The notes beneath the pieces were generated by a model, which did no database searches, had not been told where the DNA came from, and was given only the letters and a program-made list of their open reading frames with translations. Below are positions 1,740-41,163 of a stretch of DNA of 64,000 nt, one piece after another (positions within the stretch are counted from its first letter, which is position 1; every line of letters starts with the position of its first letter). The translations under genes and the position numbers were made by a program. Location of the stretch: positions 1 to 64,000 of IMG/VR virus record IMGVR_UViG_3300044633_000899; one strand, given 5' to 3'.

Positions 1740-4105
1740 TGTCAATAATAATAAATAACTATTCGGTAACTGGCGACTGCTCAAACCTTGGTGTTGGTGC
1801 TGTGTATTTTAATATAACTGGAGATAGTCCAACTTGGGCTGTTAGCGAAATAACAACAAGTGGTTTATTACCAACATCGGCATCAACGACAGATTATTAT
1901 GTGGATAATTTACCACCTGGTAATTACTTTGTTGAAATCATTGATTCTGGGATACCCACACAAGAAACCATAATATTACCAGTTTATATATCATCGGGAA
2001 CTTGTGTTTCAATAGAGACTGAAGGTACAAATTGTGGTATTACCAATGGATCTATAACAGCAACAACGGCAAACGTTTACGGACCAATTGATTTTTATTT
2101 ATTTGACATTAATGATAATTTAGTTAATTTAGCAATTGGTGTAACAAATGACTACGTGTTTAATAGTTTATCTGCCGACACATATTATGTTGTTGCAGAT
2201 GATGGTGGTGGTTGTACTGGTAGATCAGAATCTTGTATAATATACACCTCAACATCAATAACATACGGACTATACGTTGTAAACGACGCCAATTGTGTTT
2301 CAACGGCGGGAAGTGGTAAGATATTTGTAACAGGTTTAACAGGTAACCCACCATTCACGTATCTTTGGTCTAATGGTGAATTAACAAATCAAATTGAAAA
2401 TTTAATACCTGGAGCATACTCTGTAACAGTAACAGATAGTTTAGGTTGTTCACTAATACAAACCGCAATCGTTAATAATGTAAATCCAGTAACTTTTGGG
2501 TCATTTATAACAACACCACCAACTTGTTTTAGTAATGATGGTGAGATTGACGTGATTATAGTTGATGGTACAGCACCATATTATTATAGTGGTAGTAATG
2601 GTGATACAGTTATAACATATTCTCAAAATTACACATTTACTGGATTAAGTTCGGGTGGCTTCACCGTGTTTGTACAAGACGCTGGACTATGTAGTTTTAC
2701 ACAATCAACAACATTAATAACACCTAATAGTTTTTCTGTTGTAAGTGTCAACACAACTAACTCAAACTGTGGTAATAACGGACAGGTTGATGTTATAATA
2801 AATAGTGGTGGGGGTTTAGGTAGTTTTACATATTCGTTAACAAACTCAAGTGGTAATACGATATCTGATACAACACCATCAATAACATATTCATTCCCAA
2901 ACCTAAGTTCGGATACTTACACATTAACAATAACTGATGGTACTTGTACATATACGACAACCGTAACGATTAATAACGTAATATTATTCGGAATAAGTAC
3001 CTCAATAACAGGTACAACTTGTGGTTTAAATAACGGATCCGTACAAATTACCGCAACAACTGGGGGTACGTTACCATATACATACTCAATAAATGGGTTA
3101 ACACCATCTCAACAAACAATATTTAACAATTTAACATCAGGAAATTACATTGCAACGGTAACTGATTTTAATGGTTGTTCACAAACACAGAATTTTAGTA
3201 TTTCAGCATCAACAGGTGTGTTTTTTGATTTATCAACAACACAACCGATAACGGGTAATGATGGGGAAATTGATGTTTTATTATATAATGGTGAACCACC
3301 ATTTACCTACAATTGGAGTACAAATGTTGGATCACAAACAGGATTAGTTGTTACTGGATTAACAGCCGGAACATACACACTAGAGGTCATTGATGATAAT
3401 GGTTGTGCATACACTAAAAGTACCATATTAAACGGTACTAATAGAGTCTCAACGTACCAAAAATACACTATTTGTGATACTCAATTTGAAAACACTGATA
3501 TTATTGGTAAACGAGGCATCCAACAAATGTACAACGAAGGTTTTTATGATTTAACATTAGATGATGTTAATTGTGTTGTAAATTCAGCAAAATTTACTGC
3601 AGTCCTAAATGTTAACGATGTTGTAAAAAACATTGAATTTTACACATCAAATGGTTTAACAGATTTCCCAAGTGATGTTTTATGGGTTGAAACAATTGTT
3701 AATAACTTAAAAACTTTTGACGGTATAGGTGACGTTATTGTGGACTATACAACAAACACAATACAGATTTTCAACGCGTGTGATATTGTTGGTAGTACTT
3801 GTAACCCACAAATTATTAACACATTATCCGATGTGAAAGTGATTATCAATTTATTGATTGATTATGATATTTCTTGTGTGTCGTGTGATGGACCAACAAC
3901 CACAACAACAACAACCTGTTTATTTAATGAGTTTGAAATACAACTTGGTAGTCCTTGTACTTTTTACTTATATGATTGTGATGGAAGTATATTTGATACG
4001 ATTAGTTTTGTTAGTGGTGGAACATATACTATTTGTGCCGCGAGTTACGGACATGATATATGTGCTGTTAGTTTACCAATAATTCTTGGTCCTTGTAACC
4101 CATAA
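1739..4105 (+). CDS. Large beta-rich virion fibre/adhesin-like protein with SprB-like repeats
   Basis: Repeated GxIxVxxxGGxPPYTYxW and LxxGxYxVxVxDxxGC units. Ser/Thr/Gly/Cys rich, with a poly-Thr near the C-terminus. Confidence 0.65.
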   Translation: MSIIINNYSVTGDCSNLGVGAVYFNITGDSPTWAVSEITTSGLLPTSASTTDYYVDNLPPGNYFVEIIDSGIPTQETIILPVYISSGTCVSIETEGTNCGITNGSITATTANVYGPIDFYLFDINDNLVNLAIGVTNDYVFNSLSADTYYVVADDGGGCTGRSESCIIYTSTSITYGLYVVNDANCVSTAGSGKIFVTGLTGNPPFTYLWSNGELTNQIENLIPGAYSVTVTDSLGCSLIQTAIVNNVNPVTFGSFITTPPTCFSNDGEIDVIIVDGTAPYYYSGSNGDTVITYSQNYTFTGLSSGGFTVFVQDAGLCSFTQSTTLITPNSFSVVSVNTTNSNCGNNGQVDVIINSGGGLGSFTYSLTNSSGNTISDTTPSITYSFPNLSSDTYTLTITDGTCTYTTTVTINNVILFGISTSITGTTCGLNNGSVQITATTGGTLPYTYSINGLTPSQQTIFNNLTSGNYIATVTDFNGCSQTQNFSISASTGVFFDLSTTQPITGNDGEIDVLLYNGEPPFTYNWSTNVGSQTGLVVTGLTAGTYTLEVIDDNGCAYTKSTILNGTNRVSTYQKYTICDTQFENTDIIGKRGIQQMYNEGFYDLTLDDVNCVVNSAKFTAVLNVNDVVKNIEFYTSNGLTDFPSDVLWVETIVNNLKTFDGIGDVIVDYTTNTIQIFNACDIVGSTCNPQIINTLSDVKVIINLLIDYDISCVSCDGPTTTTTTTCLFNEFEIQLGSPCTFYLYDCDGSIFDTISFVSGGTYTICAASYGHDICAVSLPIILGPCNP

Positions 4106-4430: not shown

Positions 4431-5978
4431 ATGGGATTTTTAACTAGTAGAACAATAGCACCAACAGTAACGACAAACGACCTCGTACACATCGTAATTA
4501 CTGGTGATACATCACAAGGAAATCCATCAGGATCATCATATAAAGCAACTATTGGTCAAATAGGTTTAGCAATTGGTACTGGAAACACGATAACAATTAG
4601 TGGGGGTACAGACATTTCAGTTACGGGATCACACCCAAATTTTGGTATTAGTTTTACAGGAACAACAGGTGGTGATTATTTACCATTAAGTGGTGGTACA
4701 GTAAGTGGGGAAACCATATTTACAAGTGGTATAACAGCAAATACAATATCCGCAACAACCATTGGTACTAGTGGTAACTGTGTTGATGATATCTACGTAT
4801 ATAATATACATTCCTGTTCACCATTAAATATAAACCCATTGAATGAAGGTAATATTTATTTCGGACAAACAAGTGGTATTACAATTGATGTTACAAATAA
4901 TAGACTTGGTATTAATAACCCAACACCAACATATCCGTTAGATATTTTAGGTAATGGTAATTCTGGTAGTTTTTATTATACACCATCAAGTGCTGGAGGT
5001 CTTACTTTTTTAAGTGGTACCACAACAACACCAACAGACTCAATTGTGAGGTACGGAGTATCAACACCATCGTATTTAACAAAACCAACAGCATCAATGA
5101 CATTTGGTATTAGAGGGTGGGGTGATTCAACATATAATGCGTATGGTAATAATGGTGATGGTTTTATACGAGCCTCGGTTGAAGTGAATGGATTGACGTT
5201 TATAAAAGCCCAAGGATCGGGAACAAGTGATTATATTCGTTTCTTTGCTGGATCAAACCCAACACTAACACCAAACTTGATGATAAATGGTACAGGAGCA
5301 ACGCAAGGGTTTGTCGGTATCAACACATCAACACCAAGTCAAAGGTTACACGTTAGTGGAAATACGTTAATTGATGGTAGTCTTACTGCAACAACGGCAA
5401 ACACCTCAACATTGGTGATAAACACAACACCAACAACAGATCCTACAAATAATAATGTTTTAGTGAGGGATGTGTCAACCGGTGTTGTTAAACAAAGAGA
5501 TATTACAAGTACTTTAAATAAAAATTACGCATCTTTTTATGATACTGGTGATCAAACAGGTCTTGCTAATGCTGTATTAACTATGTCGGCAAACACATCA
5601 GATTCTTGGAATACTGGAATTACTTTAAGTGCAAATACAAGATTTGTAATACAAAACCCTGGTGTTTATAGTTTAGCGTTTAGTGGTCAAATGGTAAAAA
5701 CTGGTGGTAATACTGCTACGCACGCACACATATGGCTTTACCAAAATGGTCTTGATGTACCAAATAGTGCTAGTCAGATTGGGTTTCCTTCAAATTCTGT
5801 ATATATTGTTTCTGCTTGGAATTTCTTTTTTAGTACTACAACACCAAACGAATATGTTGAATTAAAATGGGAAATAAATAGTAATGTAGATAACCAATTG
5901 TCATTAAAGCATCAACCAGCGACTGGAAATGTACCGGCAATCCCATCTCTTATTGTTACTATTAACCAAGTAAATTAA
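4431..5978 (+). CDS. Tail fibre/spike-like protein with a C-terminal TNF/C1q (BclA-like) domain
   Basis: Contains RLGINNPTPTYPLDI and VGINTSTPSQRLHVSG fibre repeats. The C-terminal beta domain includes FVIQNPGVYSLAFSGQ. Confidence 0.6.
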   Translation: MGFLTSRTIAPTVTTNDLVHIVITGDTSQGNPSGSSYKATIGQIGLAIGTGNTITISGGTDISVTGSHPNFGISFTGTTGGDYLPLSGGTVSGETIFTSGITANTISATTIGTSGNCVDDIYVYNIHSCSPLNINPLNEGNIYFGQTSGITIDVTNNRLGINNPTPTYPLDILGNGNSGSFYYTPSSAGGLTFLSGTTTTPTDSIVRYGVSTPSYLTKPTASMTFGIRGWGDSTYNAYGNNGDGFIRASVEVNGLTFIKAQGSGTSDYIRFFAGSNPTLTPNLMINGTGATQGFVGINTSTPSQRLHVSGNTLIDGSLTATTANTSTLVINTTPTTDPTNNNVLVRDVSTGVVKQRDITSTLNKNYASFYDTGDQTGLANAVLTMSANTSDSWNTGITLSANTRFVIQNPGVYSLAFSGQMVKTGGNTATHAHIWLYQNGLDVPNSASQIGFPSNSVYIVSAWNFFFSTTTPNEYVELKWEINSNVDNQLSLKHQPATGNVPAIPSLIVTINQVN

Positions 5979-24337: not shown

Positions 24338-24364
24338 CCCACCGTAAATGGTGGGTTTTTTTTT
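24338..24364 (+). terminator. Intrinsic terminator
   Basis: CCCACC-gtaaat-GGTGGG followed by a T run. Confidence 0.85.
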
Positions 24365-24410
24365 GATCATATCATTTGACATTAAAAAACGTTTCACCTA
24401 TATTTCATCT

Positions 24411-25247
24411 ATGAATGTATTAAGTTTATTTGATGGATTATCTTGTGGTCAAATTGCCCTTAATAGAGTTGGAATTAAATACAACAAGTATTTTGCGTCA
24501 GAGATTGACGAATACGCGATTAAAGTAACCCAACAGAATTATCCAGGAACAACCCAAATTGGTGATGTAACACAAGTTAAAGGATCTGAGTTACCACAAA
24601 TTGATCTTATCATTGGTGGATCACCTTGTCAAGGATTTTCATTTGCGGGAAAAGGTTTAAATTTTGACGATCCAAGAAGTGCTTTATTCTTTGAATTTGT
24701 TAGATTAGTAAAAGAATGTAATCCGAAATACTTTTTACTTGAAAATGTTAAAATGAAAAAAGAACACGAAGATGTTATTACTGAACATATGGGGATTAAA
24801 CCTATTAAGATTAATAGTAAATTAGTATCAGCACAAAGTAGGGAAAGACTATATTGGACTAATATTCCGAACATAAAACAACCGGAAGATAAAGGTATTT
24901 TAGTTAAAGATATTTTAGATTATACCACCGAACATAAACTTTTAACTGAGAAGGGTATTAAATCACAAATCCATTATGCCAAAAATTACAAGTCAATAGG
25001 TAAATCACCAACATTAACTAGTGAATTGGCGCACGGTTGGGGTAAGAACATCACACCCAAATGTTATATTGAAATAAAAGCAATTACTGGTGAGGATAGG
25101 TTATTCTCACCATTAGAATGTGAACGATTACAAACAGTTCCAGATAATTACACTTCAGTTGTATCAAATACACAAAGATATAAAATGTTGGGGAATGGAT
25201 GGACAGTAGATGTAATCGCACATATATTTAAAAATATTGAAATATGA
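24411..25247 (+). CDS. DNA cytosine-C5 methyltransferase #1
   Basis: SLFDG (motif I), GSPCQ (IV), ENV (VI), QSRER (VIII) and GNG (X). True start ATG at 24411. Confidence 0.92.
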   Translation: MNVLSLFDGLSCGQIALNRVGIKYNKYFASEIDEYAIKVTQQNYPGTTQIGDVTQVKGSELPQIDLIIGGSPCQGFSFAGKGLNFDDPRSALFFEFVRLVKECNPKYFLLENVKMKKEHEDVITEHMGIKPIKINSKLVSAQSRERLYWTNIPNIKQPEDKGILVKDILDYTTEHKLLTEKGIKSQIHYAKNYKSIGKSPTLTSELAHGWGKNITPKCYIEIKAITGEDRLFSPLECERLQTVPDNYTSVVSNTQRYKMLGNGWTVDVIAHIFKNIEI

Positions 25248-26041
25248 ATGTATTAAGTTTATTTGACGGCATGTCAGTAGGACAAATTGCTCTTAATAGA
25301 GTTGGAATTAAGTATGACAAATATTTTGCATCAGAGATTGATAAATTTGCAATACAAGTAACACAATGTAATTATCCAGAAACAACCCAAATTGGGGATG
25401 TAACACAAGTGAAAGGTTCCGATCTGCCACAAATTGATCTTATTATTGGTGGATCACCTTGTCAAGGATTTTCATTTGCTGGTAAACAATTGAATTTTGA
25501 TGATCCAAGAAGTGCTTTATTCTTTGAGTTTGTTAGGTTAATTGAAGAATGTAAACCAAAGTATTTTCTACTTGAAAATGTTGTGATGAAAAAAGAATAT
25601 GAAGATATTATCACACAACATATGGGTGTAAAACCAATTCTCATAAATAGTAATCTTGTTTCAGCACAAAATAGAAAACGACTTTATTGGACCAACATTC
25701 CAAACATAGAACAACCAGAAGATTTAAATATAACTATGTCTGACATACTTTTAAGTGGTCAACATATACTTGTCTCAAAACAAAAAAAGGAACATAAACC
25801 TGGTGGTGATAAAACGGCAACATTACTTGCTAGAGACTATAAAGGATTTGGTAATCAACAAATGAGTGGTGCTATGGACAATGGTAATATTAGAATGTTT
25901 ACACCTGTAGAATATGAAAGATTACAAACTGTTCCAGATAATTACACCTCTGTCGTCTCAAACACCCAAAGATATAAAATGCTTGGAAATGGATGGACTG
26001 TTGATGTAATTGCACATATATTTAAAAATATAGAAATATGA
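25244..26041 (+). CDS. DNA cytosine-C5 methyltransferase #2
   Basis: Same motif set with a different TRD. ATGA overlap with #1. Confidence 0.92.
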   Translation: MNVLSLFDGMSVGQIALNRVGIKYDKYFASEIDKFAIQVTQCNYPETTQIGDVTQVKGSDLPQIDLIIGGSPCQGFSFAGKQLNFDDPRSALFFEFVRLIEECKPKYFLLENVVMKKEYEDIITQHMGVKPILINSNLVSAQNRKRLYWTNIPNIEQPEDLNITMSDILLSGQHILVSKQKKEHKPGGDKTATLLARDYKGFGNQQMSGAMDNGNIRMFTPVEYERLQTVPDNYTSVVSNTQRYKMLGNGWTVDVIAHIFKNIEI

Positions 26042-26946
26042 ATGTATTAAGTTTATTTGATGGGTTATCTTGCGGTCAAATCGCATTGAACCGTGCTGAT
26101 ATTAAATATGAAAATTATTTTGCTTCCGAAATTGACAAACACGCAATCAAGGTAACGCAACACAATTACCCAAACACAATACAACTTGGAAGTGTTACAG
26201 AAATTAAAGGGTCTGATTTACCACAAATTGATCTTATCATTGGTGGATCACCGTGTCAAGGATTTTCATTCGCTGGTAAACAATTAAACTTTGATGATCC
26301 ACGAAGTAAATTATTTTTTGAGTTTGTTAGACTAAAAAATGAGTTAAATCCAAAATACTTTTTACTTGAAAACGTTGTGATGAAACAAGAGTTCCAGGAT
26401 GTAATAACCGAGTATCTGGGTGTCAAACCAATTAAGATTAATAGTAAATTGGTATCAGCACAAACCAGAGAAAGATTATATTGGACTAATATACCAAATT
26501 TAAAACAACCAGAGGATTGTGGAATAACATTAAATGATATCTTGGAGGATATTGGTATAAATGGTGAATCTTTTGATAAAACAAAATTAAATAAAGCGAC
26601 AATATTAGGTAGAAGATTAGATTCTCGTGGTAAACGGATGGATTATGACAAAACAATCCCAATTACACAATGTTTGGAGGTTAGAGCGACAAATAGAGAT
26701 AAAAGTAATTGTTTAACAACGGTTGCAAAAGATAATGTTTTAACAACACTACCAATTGGTCGTCACGTTGACGCATTTAAAAAGAATTTACCATTCAGAT
26801 ATTTTACAATAAAAGAACATTGTAGACTACAAACCGTACCAGATACTTATTTTGATGGTGTTGCGAGTGAAAATCAAATTAGAAAAATGTTAGGAAATGG
26901 GTGGACAGTTGATGTTATTTCACATATTTTTAAAAATATTTTGTGA
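26038..26946 (+). CDS. DNA cytosine-C5 methyltransferase #3
   Basis: Same motif set with a longer TRD. ATGA overlap with #2. Confidence 0.92.
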   Translation: MNVLSLFDGLSCGQIALNRADIKYENYFASEIDKHAIKVTQHNYPNTIQLGSVTEIKGSDLPQIDLIIGGSPCQGFSFAGKQLNFDDPRSKLFFEFVRLKNELNPKYFLLENVVMKQEFQDVITEYLGVKPIKINSKLVSAQTRERLYWTNIPNLKQPEDCGITLNDILEDIGINGESFDKTKLNKATILGRRLDSRGKRMDYDKTIPITQCLEVRATNRDKSNCLTTVAKDNVLTTLPIGRHVDAFKKNLPFRYFTIKEHCRLQTVPDTYFDGVASENQIRKMLGNGWTVDVISHIFKNIL

Positions 26947-26948
26947 AA

Positions 26949-26982
26949 GTTGTTATTTATTCAAAATAAAGTGTTACATTTG
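26949..26982 (+). promoter_or_regulatory. Bacteroidota-type promoter (-7 TACATTTG) facing an ORF-free region
   Basis: TACATTTG at 26975-26982, GTTG about 22 nt upstream. Confidence 0.6.
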
Positions 26983-26987
26983 TACTG

Positions 26988-27296
26988 TTGGATTAATCAA
27001 CAACTTGTTTTTGGACTCCCAAGTATAGAAAAGGAGTTTATCACTTAACTCACGGGTTAGGTGGGGTGATTGAAAAAGATGGGAGATCCCCAAAATACAC
27101 AGAAACGTGGTAATTACCAGCCATCCCATATACGGCTAGATGGGCGTTAAGTCTTTACGAGATAAGGACAGAAAGGACGGGTTAAAAATCACAAATGAGC
27201 TCAAAGTGATGGTTTAAGTAGAAGTAGTTTGGGAAGAAACGAGCCCAGGCTGATAGGAAGATGGAAGACGATTAAGATACTAATATCCTATCCTAC
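26988..27296 (+). ncRNA. Candidate ~310-nt structured non-coding RNA
   Basis: GC-enriched and ORF-free in a dense genome, has its own promoter, and contains many hairpins with G-U pairs. Confidence 0.55.
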
Positions 27297-27719
27297 TTAA
27301 GCAACCCAAATTACAACTTGATTATCACCAACTCTAAAAGGATTTGAAGGTGATTCCCTAAATACAGTTGAAATTTCTAATCTCCAGTAAGTACCCCCAA
27401 TATGTATAGGGTTTATCGCTAACGCTAATTCCCGTTCAACTGATTTAACGACAAATGGTTTTTTGTTAAAAATTTCTCTATTAATAATTTTTTCGGCGAT
27501 ATCACCCTTAACTAGTGAAATAAGTTCTTTAATTTCTCTATTTTCAATAGGGTTCTGATTATAATCTGTTCCATCAAGTTCTGGTCTTGTAGATCTATCA
27601 AAAGCATGACTCCTCCTGTCAACTTCAAAATTAAATGAAACCTCAAGATTTGAAACAACTTGTGCTATTTTCTTTTCAAGTATTAAATGTTTTCTAATTG
27701 ACTCTCTAAGTAGTGACAT
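27297..27719 (-). CDS. Hypothetical (putative virion-internal) protein
   Basis: N-terminal MSLLRESIRKHLILE motif. Confidence 0.7.
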   Translation of the reverse strand: MSLLRESIRKHLILEKKIAQVVSNLEVSFNFEVDRRSHAFDRSTRPELDGTDYNQNPIENREIKELISLVKGDIAEKIINREIFNKKPFVVKSVERELALAINPIHIGGTYWRLEISTVFRESPSNPFRVGDNQVVIWVA

Positions 27720-35742: not shown

Positions 35743-36678
35743 ATGAATACTGACAATTATTACACTATTTTAGGCGTCTCAGAAGACGCAACACAAGATG
35801 ATATAAAAAAAGCGTATAGAAAGTTAGCGAAAGAAAATCATCCAGATAAAGGTGGTGATGAGGAAATTTTTAAAAACATATCAATTGCTTACGACGCTAT
35901 TGGTAATGAGGAAAGTCGTAAGAAATACGATTTTGAACGAAAAAACCCTTTCAGTGGAATTAAAGGTCAATATGGTGAAGCGTTCAGATCTGCCTTTAGA
36001 AATATGCACAGAGGTCACGAATCACAAGAACATAGAGTCCACACAAAAACAATCACAATTGATATTACAGTGTTAGATTCTTTCCTATCAAAAGAAAAAC
36101 AATTTGAGTTTAATCGGAAAATTAAATGTGAACCTTGTGGTGGTAAAGGTGGTGAAAGACAAACTTGTCAAATATGTTCAGGACAAGGGCAGGTCATACA
36201 ACAGATGGGTAGTGGTATGTTTATACAAATTGTTTCTATGATGTGTAACAATTGCTCTGGACGAGGTTATACGTTGGTAAATAAATGTAACGAATGTTTA
36301 GGAAATGGTACAAAAAATGAAGCAAAAAAAGTTGAGGTAAAAATACCACACGGTATTGATAATGGGCAATTTTTAAGAATGAAAGGTGTTGGTGATTTTA
36401 ATGAAGGTTTGTATGGTGATTTAATAATTAAGGTTAATTTACAAAATGAAAACGACTTTGATAAGTACGACAATAATTTAGTATATAACAAATACTTTAA
36501 TATTAATGATTTTAATGAAGAATCTTTTGAAGTACCACACCCTGACGGAACAATGAAAGTCAATTTTCCAAAAAATATTGACACATCCAAACCATTAAGA
36601 GTAAAAGGTAAGGGATTTAAATATAATGGTGTTGGTGATTTATTTATAAATCAATATTTAAAGTATGAAAAACTTTAA
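35743..36678 (+). CDS. dnaJ: DnaJ chaperone
   Basis: J domain with HPD, four CxxCxGxG repeats and a C-terminal GDL domain. TATATTTG box at 35707-35714. Confidence 0.95.
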   Translation: MNTDNYYTILGVSEDATQDDIKKAYRKLAKENHPDKGGDEEIFKNISIAYDAIGNEESRKKYDFERKNPFSGIKGQYGEAFRSAFRNMHRGHESQEHRVHTKTITIDITVLDSFLSKEKQFEFNRKIKCEPCGGKGGERQTCQICSGQGQVIQQMGSGMFIQIVSMMCNNCSGRGYTLVNKCNECLGNGTKNEAKKVEVKIPHGIDNGQFLRMKGVGDFNEGLYGDLIIKVNLQNENDFDKYDNNLVYNKYFNINDFNEESFEVPHPDGTMKVNFPKNIDTSKPLRVKGKGFKYNGVGDLFINQYLKYEKL

Positions 36679-36939: not shown

Positions 36940-38880
36940 ATGGAATTAGTAAATATATTATCAAAAGTAGTTAAAGAAAATTTAACGACTAAAAAAATAT
37001 TATTAGAATACCCTGAATCTACGGTTAAAAAATTATTAGATAAGTTTACAAAAGAAACTGATGAAACTGAAGATGTTATACGTAAAACAATCTCTGATTT
37101 TGAACGATTTAAAAGTTCGTTAAGTAATGAAGATAAAGATATTTTTAAACATTCATATGAAAAAATAAAAAGTTTGATTAAAGATAAATCAACACAACAA
37201 AAAACTAAAAAAGATTTAGATGGTTTAGTCCAGGATTATATCGCAAAAAATAAAGGTGCTGATTTACAATTAACAAAGAACAACATTAAAAAATTCTTTG
37301 AGATTAAAACAAATTTACCTCAAGCGAGAGAATTTAAATCAGACGTTACAAATATTAATCCCTCTGAGTTAAATAGTTTGGTTCAACGGTACTTTACAAA
37401 GTTCAATAACCAAGGTGTCAATGAACTTATAGTAGCAATAGCACAAAAATTTCACGATGAAAATCCAGATGAAGATGTTATGACTGCAATCTTACCTAGG
37501 GTTAAACGTTTTGTAAAACACTACGATTTAGTTCCACTAAATGCTAAGTTGAGTAAATTAATGAATTTTATTGAATTTGAACATATTGTTGATGGATACA
37601 CACCAATGGAAGAGAGTGAGTATACAGTACCAGAAGTTGACACTAGTGATGTTGATATTGCATATGAAGATGATGATATTTTAATTTTTGCACCAGACCA
37701 AAAACATAAATGTATTAACATTAGAAAGAAATTCGCACCAGATAGAAGATGGTGTACTTCTTGGGAGGGATCCTCAAATTATTATTACAATTATCGTTTA
37801 AATCAAAATTTAACATTATATTATGTTATTCAGAAAAATTTACCAGAGACTGATTTAAATTACGCAACCGTTGTCCTTGTTGATAAATATGGTAGTATGA
37901 GATTAGCCGATGGATCAAACTCTGGACGATACGCTGGTGGTAATGAATTACCTTGGAGTGAAATTGTTTCTAAAGTTCCCGCACTTAAAGGTAAGGAACA
38001 ATACTTAGAAGCAAAACCATACGATGGTGAAGATGAGGCAAAATTAAAAAAATATAAATCTTACAATTTAAATACAACAGATCCTATTTCAGAATTAGGT
38101 AGTTTAGAAGAAGTTGAATTATGGTTAGAATTAAGAAGTCCCGATCTTAAATCAACACCAAGAGGTGATGAGATTTTTGGGAATTTTCCGGAAGAATTAC
38201 AAAAAAAATACATTGGTTTAGGGAACGAATTATCCGCTGGGATGGTTAGAGCATTAACACCTAGTGCAATGGGTTACTATATTTCAAAGAAACGTGAAAA
38301 ATTATTACAAAAGACACTTAAAGATTTAAATGAAAATGATATGGAAATCATATTAAGTAAAGAAATGAGACCATATTATAAAAGTTTAAAGGAAAAATTT
38401 GCTAACGAACTTAATAATCAATTTGGTGATATTATACAAATTAAATACCCTTCAGATACTAGCGCAAAATATATTAGAATGTTTGGTATGAATGAGTTAT
38501 TAGATAGTATACCAGACACAACAATACTTTTTGAGGTTGATAACACATCAAACGACAAAGTAATCTTTGACATTCCAGATTCAATTGGTAAATTAACTAA
38601 TTTACAAACATTAGTTTTTAATAATTGTATTAATAAATTACCAGAAACAGTAGGTAATCTTACTAATTTACAATTTTTAACTTTAACTAATAATGAGGAA
38701 TTGACGACATTCCCAAATAGTGTTGTTGATTTAAGATGTTTATTGTTTATCTCTGTTGAAAATTCACCAATTGATATTGAAACATTACCAGAAGAGTTTA
38801 AAAGATATGTTGACACAAGTGCTGACACATTTTGGCCAGTTAACTATCCTGATGAGATGAAAGGCGACTGTTTACTTTAA
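36940..38880 (+). CDS. Multidomain protein with a central WCT domain and C-terminal leucine-rich repeats
   Basis: RRWCTSW...TLYYVI domain, then IPDSIGKLTNLQTL and LPETVGNLTNLQFLTL LRRs. Confidence 0.8.
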   Translation: MELVNILSKVVKENLTTKKILLEYPESTVKKLLDKFTKETDETEDVIRKTISDFERFKSSLSNEDKDIFKHSYEKIKSLIKDKSTQQKTKKDLDGLVQDYIAKNKGADLQLTKNNIKKFFEIKTNLPQAREFKSDVTNINPSELNSLVQRYFTKFNNQGVNELIVAIAQKFHDENPDEDVMTAILPRVKRFVKHYDLVPLNAKLSKLMNFIEFEHIVDGYTPMEESEYTVPEVDTSDVDIAYEDDDILIFAPDQKHKCINIRKKFAPDRRWCTSWEGSSNYYYNYRLNQNLTLYYVIQKNLPETDLNYATVVLVDKYGSMRLADGSNSGRYAGGNELPWSEIVSKVPALKGKEQYLEAKPYDGEDEAKLKKYKSYNLNTTDPISELGSLEEVELWLELRSPDLKSTPRGDEIFGNFPEELQKKYIGLGNELSAGMVRALTPSAMGYYISKKREKLLQKTLKDLNENDMEIILSKEMRPYYKSLKEKFANELNNQFGDIIQIKYPSDTSAKYIRMFGMNELLDSIPDTTILFEVDNTSNDKVIFDIPDSIGKLTNLQTLVFNNCINKLPETVGNLTNLQFLTLTNNEELTTFPNSVVDLRCLLFISVENSPIDIETLPEEFKRYVDTSADTFWPVNYPDEMKGDCLL

Positions 38881-38893
38881 TTATAACTACAAT

Positions 38894-39184
38894 ATGAAAA
38901 ATGTTGATATTGAAATTTATTTGAATCAAGTTATTACTTTTTTTGAAAAAAACCCAAATGATCTAATGGATTTAATTGGTGAATTACAAAAAGATGAGTT
39001 TTATTTAAAACTTCGTCAACAATGTGAAAAAAATGTTGAAGAAGGGAAAGATATTACCTTAACTAAAGAACAAATGATAAATATTATTGTTGATTTAAAA
39101 ATACCAGATATTGTTGATAAACAGGAAGTTGTGGTAAACAATATCGTCCAAAAAACAAAGTTTGGTGAAATATTTTTAAATTAA
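38894..39184 (+). CDS. Hypothetical protein
   Basis: ATG start, operon context. Confidence 0.65.
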   Translation: MKNVDIEIYLNQVITFFEKNPNDLMDLIGELQKDEFYLKLRQQCEKNVEEGKDITLTKEQMINIIVDLKIPDIVDKQEVVVNNIVQKTKFGEIFLN

Positions 39185-39196
39185 TTTTAAAAAATG

Positions 39197-39227
39197 TTTG
39201 GATATTAAGAAAATATTTATACCTTTG
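39197..39227 (+). promoter_or_regulatory. Bacteroidota-type promoter (TTTG-N19-TACCTTTG)
   Basis: Perfect consensus, with no ORF downstream before a terminator. Confidence 0.8.
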
Positions 39228-39230
39228 TAT

Positions 39231-39415
39231 AGTTAAATGATTAACGAAAAATCTTAACCGAAAAGACTGAGCATAAATCTTGAGTTTGTGTAGGAATACA
39301 TCTAAAGATGGTGGTTAAGTGGGTCTCTTGGATATACCCAACCAAGCGTAAGGTGACAACACGTGAGGGAAGGCTGTCACAACATTAACCCCCAAATTAT
39401 TGGGGGTTTTGTTTT
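39231..39415 (+). ncRNA. Candidate ~180-nt structured small RNA
   Basis: Bounded by a promoter and a terminator. Has a CTTAACC/GGTTAAG long-range helix and several hairpins. Confidence 0.65.
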
Positions 39416-39416
39416 T
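39387..39416 (+). terminator. Intrinsic terminator
   Basis: AACCCCCAA-att-ATTGGGGGTT followed by a T run. Confidence 0.85.
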
Positions 39417-40000
39417 TAATTTAATGGGTTATATGTTTTAATAATTTTTGTTTCTCTATTAAAATGTTTACCATTACCTTTCATTTGGTTATATAATGTT
39501 ATATCATATATTGGTAATTTATCTAATTTACCGAGAGTATTTAAACTGACTAAAATTTCATAATTAACCCCATTTATACTTTTTAATCTCAACACATCTT
39601 TATAACCTAATTTCTGTAAAGAAATCATTTTCCATATATTATCTATATTTACTTTTACAATATTAATCCCCTCATCAATTTTAGGGTTAACAAAATTAGG
39701 ATCACTTGGGAATGTCTGTTCTCTAAAATTCCTTTCTGAAAAATGAGGATTAATTTTAATATTAAAATAGGCTTTTTTAACTTGATTTGTTTTTTTATCT
39801 GTATATTGACCTAATAAAGGACTTATTTCTTTAGCTAAAATTTTTTGTGTAATATATGTTTGTTTGATTAACTTTAAAATTTCATCATCTATATGTTCGT
39901 AGTTAGTACCCTCATTCAATGGTTTACGACCAAGGTATTGAATACTCACAATATGATATACAATCTCCTCTCTCAAAATTTTTTTAATAATTTTTTTCAT
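39416..40000 (-). CDS. Hypothetical (putative virion-internal) protein
   Basis: MKKIIKKILREE N-terminus, with a TATTTATA motif upstream on the minus strand (40006-40013). Confidence 0.7.
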   Translation of the reverse strand: MKKIIKKILREEIVYHIVSIQYLGRKPLNEGTNYEHIDDEILKLIKQTYITQKILAKEISPLLGQYTDKKTNQVKKAYFNIKINPHFSERNFREQTFPSDPNFVNPKIDEGINIVKVNIDNIWKMISLQKLGYKDVLRLKSINGVNYEILVSLNTLGKLDKLPIYDITLYNQMKGNGKHFNRETKIIKTYNPLN

Positions 40001-40071: not shown

Positions 40072-40182
40072 ATGAAAACAATTGAAATTACAATGCAGGA
40101 GATATGGTCAGCGACAAAACCAATAGTTTACAAGAGTAAAAAACAATACACTCGTAAAGAAAAACACAAAAACAACTATTGA
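40072..40182 (+). CDS. 36-aa basic peptide with an ArfA-like YxRKxKHK motif (missed by ORF track)
   Basis: MKTIEITMQEIWSATKPIVYKSKKQYTRKEKHKNNY, followed by a terminator. Confidence 0.55.
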   Translation: MKTIEITMQEIWSATKPIVYKSKKQYTRKEKHKNNY

Positions 40183-40189
40183 TTACGAT

Positions 40190-40219
40190 AAAGTGGTGGA
40201 TTTTTCTACCACTTTTTTT
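40190..40219 (+). terminator. Intrinsic terminator
   Basis: AAAGTGGTGGA...TCTACCACTTT plus a T run. Confidence 0.75.
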
Positions 40220-40231
40220 ATATTTTAAAAT

Positions 40232-40579
40232 ATGGAACGAAAGGAATTTTTTGAGAAAGAAAGTGATATTTTAAAATGGATATATGAACAAGAGGGAATG
40301 TTATTATCAAAATGTGCTGTTGATGGTAAATTAAATATAACACCAGAGTTATTATTAACTAAAAATTTTTTATTAATATATAGTGACAGTGTTATATTTG
40401 ATAATGGGTTTTTGTATTATGATGCTTTTTTTAAGAATAAATCAGACCTTTATATATATTTATCAAAGAAGGATATTCGTGATTCGGAATATAAAATAAC
40501 AATATATTTTGAGCCAAAAAACATAGAAGAAACAAAGTTCTTCATAAAAAATTTAATGAAATTAAAAGATGGAAATTAG
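40232..40579 (+). CDS. Hypothetical protein
   Basis: ATG start, operon with trx/grx. Confidence 0.65.
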   Translation: MERKEFFEKESDILKWIYEQEGMLLSKCAVDGKLNITPELLLTKNFLLIYSDSVIFDNGFLYYDAFFKNKSDLYIYLSKKDIRDSEYKITIYFEPKNIEETKFFIKNLMKLKDGN

Positions 40580-40883
40580 TAGTGTAGAATTACAAGAAAA
40601 AATTAATAAAGGTGAGAAAATAATTCTGAAGTTAGGTGCATTGTGGTGTGGTCCGTGCAAAATGTTAAAACCAATATTTGAAAAAGTGGCAAACGAGAAT
40701 ACAACCGACGTTCAAATGTATACACTTGATGTTGATTTAAACAGAGAAATCGCGATGTCATTAGGTGTTAGGAGTGTACCAACAATAAAAATGTTTAATG
40801 CTGGTGAGGTCATTGACACAAAAGTTGGTATTCAATCAGAAACCCAATTAAACGATATGATAAACACATTGATAAATGGATAA
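40569..40883 (+). CDS. trxA: Thioredoxin
   Basis: WCGPC active site and a VPT cis-Pro motif. Confidence 0.95.
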   Translation: MEISSVELQEKINKGEKIILKLGALWCGPCKMLKPIFEKVANENTTDVQMYTLDVDLNREIAMSLGVRSVPTIKMFNAGEVIDTKVGIQSETQLNDMINTLING

Positions 40884-41163
40884 AGCGGTTGTATTGTTCA
40901 CAATGAAAAGTTGTCCTTTTTGTGTTGAACTAAAAGAAATGTTGGATAAATCAAATATCCAGTTTGTTGATAGAGATATTGACGAATACGAAGAAGAATA
41001 TAATATGTTTGTTAATATTACTGAAAATGATTATGTACCAGCATTTATGTTAATTGAGGATCCAGAAACTGAAGAACCATTAACAGAGTTGTTTGCACCA
41101 GATCGTGATTTTGACGACATTAACGAAGGTTTTGAGATTATTAAATCATTTATAATTGATTAA
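40876..41163 (+). CDS. Glutaredoxin-like protein
   Basis: CPFC active site and a YVP motif. Confidence 0.85.
   Translation: MDKAVVLFTMKSCPFCVELKEMLDKSNIQFVDRDIDEYEEEYNMFVNITENDYVPAFMLIEDPETEEPLTELFAPDRDFDDINEGFEIIKSFIID

Follow-up and report, generated by a model that had tools for sequence, protein, structure and literature searches.

A gene for a small structured RNA lies in the genome of a freshwater jumbo phage, and the RNA it encodes belongs to a previously undescribed family, of which freshwater phage contigs contain five or more sequence types. That this family exists can be regarded as virtually certain. A gene for a protein whose predicted fold weakly resembles RegB and RelE stands in an obligate, one-way pairing with the RNA, and the two neighbours are probably linked in function. 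Below we describe the gene, the fold and the family, and weigh what the pair may do.

A small RNA gene in a freshwater jumbo phage

The IMG/VR virus record comprises 296,330 bp with a GC content of ~30%; its first 64 kb, referred to as the window, were analysed here. DNA runs that hold the RNA locus come from lake and other freshwater metagenomes. The Bacteroidota-type promoter motif (TTTG, a spacer of 18–20 nt, TAnnTTTG) occurs 35 times in the 296-kb genome, against 16 +/- 2.7 occurrences expected from a first-order Markov model of the genome with the same spacer range. This enrichment makes a freshwater bacterium of the Bacteroidota the probable host. The locus is organized as follows:

38894-39184, plus strand: 96-aa ORF, the 5' neighbour of the RNA gene
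39197-39227, plus strand: Bacteroidota-type promoter, with -33 TTTG at 39197-39200, a 19-nt spacer and the -7 box TACCTTTG at 39220-39227
39232-39252, plus strand: 5' leader with a small hairpin (39232-36/39241-45), from folding
39253-39319, plus strand: three-way junction, 64.8 bits with covariance model R2
39253-59/39313-19, plus strand: P1, from folding and relatives
39271-78/39284-91, plus strand: P2, from folding and relatives
39299-302/39307-10, plus strand: P3, 4 bp with a 4-nt loop, from folding and relatives
39260-70 (ending in GA), 39292-98 (ending in GAAUA) and 39311-12 (GU), plus strand: junction strands, with conserved bases
39320-39348, plus strand: H-type pseudoknot, S1 (39320-24/39336-40) interleaved with S2 (39327-31/39342-46), then CG at 39347-48
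39353-39380, plus strand: type-specific 3' hairpin P5 (39353-58/39375-80), its 16-nt loop rich in purines, from folding and relatives
39387-39416, plus strand: intrinsic terminator with a 9-bp stem (five G-C pairs; 39387-39408), a 4-nt loop and a T-run
39416-40000, minus strand: 194-aa ORF (P0002), convergent to the RNA gene, its conserved protein partner

Transcription is predicted to start near 39232, which gives an RNA of ~180–185 nt (39232-39416). Neither strand contains an ORF of at least 60 aa between 39185 and 39415, and the GC content is 39–45% in 39250-39400 versus 16–27% in the flanks. The terminator abuts the stop codon of the convergent 194-aa ORF. The initial annotation had described a self-contained small RNA gene of ~180 nt with a perfect promoter, an ORF-free segment and a strong terminator. 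These three elements could be confirmed by direct reading, by the ORF scan and by the hairpin with its T-run, and the self-contained gene is borne out by conservation, by covariation and by the different terminator that each family member brings along: the types at other loci each end in their own GC-rich terminator hairpin and T-run, only T5 being without a recognisable one. A complete promoter motif also precedes the family RNAs in L056, L005 and L197/L198. We rejected a coding function for the RNA gene, as the short frames differ between types and the conserved core lies in different frames or is interrupted by a stop.

Two metatranscriptome contigs map to the locus. A riverine contig of 267 nt covers only 39275-39382, plus a second copy of the core, and a lake contig covers 38500-39519. 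Such contigs, which cannot prove a discrete transcript, are suggestive of expression of the locus.

The surrounding genes encode a complete DnaJ (with its J, zinc-finger and C-terminal domains), a leucine-rich-repeat protein of 646 aa, a thioredoxin and a glutaredoxin (35743-36678, 36940-38880 and 40569-41163); this neighbourhood is an auxiliary or host-takeover region. Further downstream we noticed a 36-aa ORF at 40072-40215 with a strong terminator of its own (40190-40215), which is kept in L005 though the neighbouring ORF is absent there.

The initial annotation had also suggested an Rfam search. Run on the 64-kb window, Rfam 15 yielded no match at the gathering threshold, and up to E 10 only terminator-driven noise; ARAGORN found no tRNA or tmRNA gene in the window. 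A blastn search with T1, T2, T3 and T5 (types described below) against 50,697 cultured phage records returned only a chance 41-nt match in the RNA ligase gene of a Klebsiella phage. An exact core pattern, a search of low sensitivity, gave 12 matches in 185,579 bacterial and archaeal genomes, none of which passed the covariance model, so that no host copy was found. When the pattern was relaxed, matches in coding sequence swamped the others among the matches listed.

Relatives support a junction and a pseudoknot

Folded alone, the window sequence has an unremarkable minimum-free-energy z-score (-1.5), and structural support must therefore come from relatives. All stems are kept in the close relatives L004 and L006 (95–98% identity) and in L056, which belongs to a different, 282-kb phage (record G001). 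Pair 39257:39315 in P1 changes from A-U in the window to G-C in L056, pair 39354:39379 in P5 from U-A to C-G in the same relative, and pair 39329:39344 in S2 from U-A to C-G in L277, a member of a T1-like group; several G-U/G-C switches also occur among the relatives.

In four T1 sequences, 98% of cells were paired, compared with ~40% when the partner was slid. In 13 distinct sequences from four types, read at fixed offsets from the core, 322 of 325 pairs across five helices were canonical, against 29–44% after the 3' strand had been shifted by one to three bases. In a MAFFT alignment of the junction, all seven pairs of P1 covary with both sides changed, and none of 500 shuffles reached the observed score. 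The pseudoknot stems covary between tandem T2 copies, and the sequence of S1 and S2 is completely different in T1b, T2, T3 and T5 with the pairing still intact.

Most of the pairing drawn in the initial annotation stands. P1, P2, the 39320-24/39336-40 stem and P5 are supported by folding and by compensatory changes in relatives, and the homologue covariation that it had named as a check was found: the structure is conserved in related phages and contains covarying pairs. The P3 hairpin is present as well, but with four base pairs, not the five proposed; a fifth pair would leave a 2-nt loop. An alternative pairing of TGGTT with AACCA (39312-16/39340-44) is disrupted in L056 and L006, two of the four close relatives, and has to be given up. 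It had been taken as a hint of a switch or pseudoknot, and a knot does exist, but with other partners, AACCA belonging to the H-type knot formed by 39320-24/39336-40 and 39327-31/39342-46.

Interchangeable types around a common architecture

Relatives were recovered by pattern scans and two covariance models (R1 and R2). They fall into the following types:

T1: the window locus at 39232-39416
T1b: L005
T2: L191, L197, L199 and L281, often as two tandem copies
T3: L206, L210 and L212
T5: orphan second copy in the window at 26975-27296, plus strand, with the -7 box TACATTTG at 26975-82, the junction at 27065-27118 and the pseudoknot plus CG at 27119-27146

Further subtypes were found in L273 and L277. 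In the common architecture, the three-way junction is closed by P1. The junction strand that leads into the variable hairpin P2 has GA at its end, the one after P2 ends in GAAUA with minor variants, and GU precedes the return strand of P1. P3 has a stem of 3 or 4 bp, usually with a GNRA or UAAR loop; T2 has UUAG instead, and in T5 the loop comprises 6 nt. The pseudoknot abuts P1 without a linker in all types, and the next two bases are CG, or UG in two T3 sequences. The T5 core (27065-27146) scores 35 bits with R2 (E about 1e-5) and has a folding z-score of -2.3; this copy has longer 5' and 3' extensions and an undefined 3' end. Matches of model R1 in G000, G002, G003 and G004 turned out to be terminator-only and were discarded, and in the related jumbo records G002, G004 and G005 a family RNA was undetectable.

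The types behave as mosaic modules. In L005, flanks and promoter are 97–100% identical to the window, the RNA body is different, and only a 19-nt core is common to both. Types replace each other at one locus in two settings, T1 and T1b after the 96-aa ORF and T1 and T3 after an identical 127-aa ORF. One genome can hold more than one type (T1 and two T2 copies in G001, T1 and T5 in the genome of the window), and contigs in the DNA runs that have the core in common and different flanks represent still more mosaic types. Among T1 subtypes, the 3' half (knot and P5) is 89–95% identical, with identity in the 5' half going down to 58%.

The locus after the 96-aa ORF is a variable hotspot. More distant relatives of this ORF have no RNA at that position, and in distant relatives (L008-L024, ~3290-3700; L269:1535-2287) the promoter after the ORF drives a DUF932 (PF06067) gene instead.

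Some further observations concern individual types. A leader motif containing AUGAUU is common to T1, T1b and T2 (window 39238-39247; L005:3342-3351; L197 ~5405-5420) and missing in L056 and T3; T1b and T2 also have a homologous U-rich/A-rich 5' domain in common. Compared with L056, L273 carries an insertion between two RNAs (L273:1976-2030, minus strand, and flanks) that consists of the partner ORF and a second, different family RNA. The terminator sequence is identical in the two RNAs, pointing to recombination at these elements.

The T1 copy of G001 lies inside a phage tRNA cluster, with at least 12 tRNAs on the same strand within 7 kb. The 296-kb genome, next to this relative with its large cluster, has a single tRNA gene (Glu-TTC, G000:104846-104918, outside the window). 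ARAGORN reported odd tRNAs in the clusters of relatives (L210:7831-7907, L035:3843-3914), among them one with a 4-base anticodon (aaag), one with a 2-base anticodon and a tRNA-Phe(AAA); these could be frameshift-suppressor-like or degenerate genes. Directly 5' of the T5 copy are three tandem paralogous genes for C5 cytosine DNA methyltransferases (window 24348-26946, plus strand; Pfam E 1e-43 to 1e-50), probably an anti-restriction battery.

A convergent protein gene never seen without the RNA

Homologues of the 194-aa ORF are 59–98% identical to it. The proteins of 213–215 aa encoded convergently to T2 RNAs (L197, L198, L199, L223, L279 and L281) are also homologous to the 194-aa protein (hhalign probability 96%, E 4e-9, 171 columns, 25% identity). 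We counted the homologue loci with enough flanking sequence, namely the window, L269, L271, L273, L275, L282, L277/L278 and six T2 loci, and in all 13 distinct contexts a family RNA is encoded convergently just past the stop codon. L277/L278 are truncated, and the homologue there is a very divergent one. Genomes without the RNA are also without the protein. The reverse does not hold, since the RNA occurs without the protein gene in L005, L056, the T3 loci, T5 and one DNA contig. At loci where protein identity is only 59–68%, the RNA retains 89–95% identity in its type-specific 3' half.

Two neighbouring ORFs at other loci were considered as partners and dismissed. The 140-aa ORF convergent to the T5 copy is unrelated to the partner family (hhalign 0.4–1%) and the loci of its homologues carry no RNA; the 196-aa ORF beside T3 in L206 is likewise unrelated. 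By eye only, we noticed that N-termini look alike, with MK and hydrophobic residues followed by ILRE, LRES or INES, in otherwise unrelated small ORFs at 39416-40000 and 27297-27719 of the window and in L197 and L212.

No TAnnTTTG box, the host-type -7 element, is present upstream of the 194-aa ORF, so expression of the ORF may be timed differently from that of the RNA. In a lake DNA contig, 39435 is joined to 39982, with 14 nt at the joint fitting either side. This contig skips 39436-39981 and hence the ORF, which is therefore polymorphic in the phage population, being present in some members and absent from others. No obvious direct repeat was seen at the ends of the skipped segment.

Pfam, PHROG and PADLOC gave no match for the 194-aa protein. 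AlphaFold models built from two separate alignments (pLDDT 77 and pTM 0.75; pLDDT 70 and pTM 0.68) both display a beta-alpha-alpha-beta-beta-beta core, i.e. a strand, two helices and three strands. In an exhaustive structural comparison, T4 RegB ranked second for model 1 (Z 3.7, 113 residues) and first for model 2 (Z 4.5, 116 residues); all Z values were below 5, and the comparison tool itself notes that scores in this range can arise from nothing more than a common arrangement. Chains of RelE, HigB, ParE, YafQ, YoeB, MqsR and CdiA-CT nucleases fill much of both match lists, and a RegB-type phage nuclease is also among the matches from a viral library (BFVD). Foldseek against the PDB, the ESM Atlas and a sequence profile against PDB sequences returned no usable match. 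In the predicted fold, the invariant residues His86, Glu89, Arg90 and Arg93 are on the first core helix; the protein is predicted to be a soluble alpha/beta protein and has no transmembrane-type helix. The models thus point weakly to a RegB/RelE-like fold, and on this basis the protein would be a nuclease.

What the RNA may do

We tentatively propose that the RNA binds and restrains the RegB/RelE-like nuclease, the two forming an RNA-antidote/RNase-toxin module on a phage; we regard this as possible, if short of probable. Host RNA polymerase would transcribe the 39232-39416 RNA from its early-type promoter. The junction with its invariant bases, stacked on the H-type pseudoknot, would offer a binding platform to the product of 39416-40000, a protein of ~200 aa with a predicted RegB/RelE-like endoribonuclease fold, and binding would keep this protein inactive or direct it. 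Copies without a protein gene, such as 27065-27146, would serve as spares or decoys. What we infer here is that the RNA binds the protein, that the protein is a nuclease and that the RNA restrains it. An antidote fits the one-way dependence, in which the RNA is often seen alone but the protein never is, and it fits the pseudoknot in the RNA; that the type-specific 3' half is so strongly constrained in sequence would fit a surface in contact with protein. A protein-binding or antitoxin-like role, already among the roles considered in the initial annotation, is thus favoured by the obligate pairing with a RegB/RelE-like gene. The DNA contig with the RNA and without the ORF implies that the RNA must also have value alone.

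The same synteny could mean that the 194-aa protein uses the RNA as a positive cofactor, guide or scaffold in a ribonucleoprotein enzyme, with the variable helices setting specificity. Several divergent RNA types in genomes with one protein copy, and peripheral modules swapped around a fixed core, are in line with such an enzyme. However, no conserved single-stranded guide-like segment is seen, the variable parts being mostly helices, and orphan RNAs occur in contigs without the protein nearby; neither point is decisive, and we consider this explanation unlikely but worth keeping in mind. Synteny could also reflect a shared accessory island instead of function. The RNA would then be an independent decoy or sponge that targets some host factor, such as a host RNase, a toxin used in defence or a protein that binds RNA, with the ORF merely in the same variable island. 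This agrees with RNAs that occur without the ORF, with the early host-type promoter, with the swapping of types at identical loci, with the tRNA-cluster location in one relative and with the position of the second window copy behind three anti-restriction-type methylase genes. It leaves unexplained, however, why the RNA is never missing beside this protein family, across protein identities of 25–98% and two types of RNA, and we doubt that it is the correct explanation.

Read-through of the ORF mRNA into the RNA gene could in principle produce a duplex that controls the ORF in cis, as in type I-like antisense systems; the genes are convergent with one terminator hairpin in common, whose minus-strand U-run is poor. 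Type I toxins, however, are small hydrophobic peptides and not soluble alpha/beta proteins of 194 aa, antisense pairing needs neither invariant junction bases nor a covarying pseudoknot, and the annotated units do not overlap. We rejected assignment to type I and find cis-antisense control quite improbable. The compact junction-plus-pseudoknot core with invariant unpaired bases, on a phage and near tRNAs, also brings to mind a new ribozyme that cleaves itself or a stand-alone aptamer for some ligand, and GA/GA bases flank P2 as in hammerhead and k-junction cores. Of the hammerhead core strands around its three stems, CUGANGA and GAAA, only the GA and GAA bases beside P2 are present, and T1b, T2 and T3, three of the four types, have no CUGA turn; no Rfam ribozyme or riboswitch matches even at E 10, and there is no same-strand downstream gene to regulate. 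Such an activity thus appears very improbable. The 6S-like sigma/RNA polymerase decoy of the initial annotation has only the size (~180 nt) and the stand-alone transcription unit in its favour. The RNA is multi-branched, with a three-way junction, a pseudoknot and hairpins in place of a long irregular hairpin whose large central bubble imitates an open promoter, and no 6S model matches it. We see next to no chance that it acts in this way.

Relation to known systems

Several phage RNAs are comparable in size or setting. The pRNA of phi29 is phage-encoded, has ~170 nt, its own promoter and a three-way junction core, and keeps its structure with poor conservation of sequence. The Rfam pRNA model, however, does not match the RNAs described here, which have an intramolecular pseudoknot and no link to packaging genes. 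The stable RNAs C and D of T4 and the GOLLD and ROOL RNAs are orphan structured phage RNAs beside or inside tRNA clusters. The new family has a member in such a cluster in one relative, but it displays no sequence or model similarity to these RNAs and has a defined partner gene.

The antidote reading recalls type III toxin-antitoxin systems (ToxIN, CptIN and TenpIN), in which an endoribonuclease is neutralised by direct binding of a pseudoknotted non-coding RNA, and which are tied to phage-host conflict; phages can carry RNA mimics (PMC5086642, PMC8860590, PMC4627078). The phage RNA likewise forms a pseudoknot, with binding and inhibition of the 194-aa protein being putative. A type III antitoxin is an array of short tandem repeats located upstream of the toxin on the same strand, with a terminator between the two (PMC5086642, PMC8860590). 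The phage RNA, in contrast, is a single unit of 150–300 nt with no repeat array, the sole duplication being that of whole genes in tandem in T2, and RNA and protein genes are convergent in every context. The protein carries no ToxN/AbiQ, CptN or TenpN signature and resembles RelE/RegB in its models, and the module is phage-borne. Since it has no repeat array, convergent genes and a different protein family, the pair is not a member of the type III systems.

T4 RegB and RelE, YoeB and ParE, which are the best, if weak, matches of both models, belong with the RelE/RegB-like (BECR) ribonucleases, whose core has two helices packed on a four-stranded antiparallel sheet; the predicted topology of the partner would agree with this core. 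To our knowledge, no RNA partner of RegB has been described. The protein differs from T4 RegB and RelE in that the similarity is confined to Z 3.7–4.5, no sequence similarity is found and ~75 extra N-terminal residues remain unmatched. T4 RegB is an early-acting phage function (PMC3014915). More speculatively, and with some doubt, the pair may represent a new phage-borne class in which a RegB/RelE-fold endoribonuclease would be neutralised by a single three-way-junction/pseudoknot RNA, with interchangeable types and orphan copies serving as decoys against related host nucleases; RegB-type phage RNases would then have the RNA 'antitoxin' partner about which there has been speculation.

With these RNAs, a well-supported structured family from uncultured freshwater jumbo phages joins the very short list of phage non-coding RNAs. 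The family is tied to a previously unannotated protein family whose sole structural relatives, by weak matches, are mRNA-cutting toxins, and the two make a testable pair. If the RNA does restrain a RegB/RelE-like nuclease, antidotes made of RNA would no longer be confined to the three known type III families or to bacteria but would reach into the lytic programmes of phages, and this would explain why phages keep several interchangeable RNA types.
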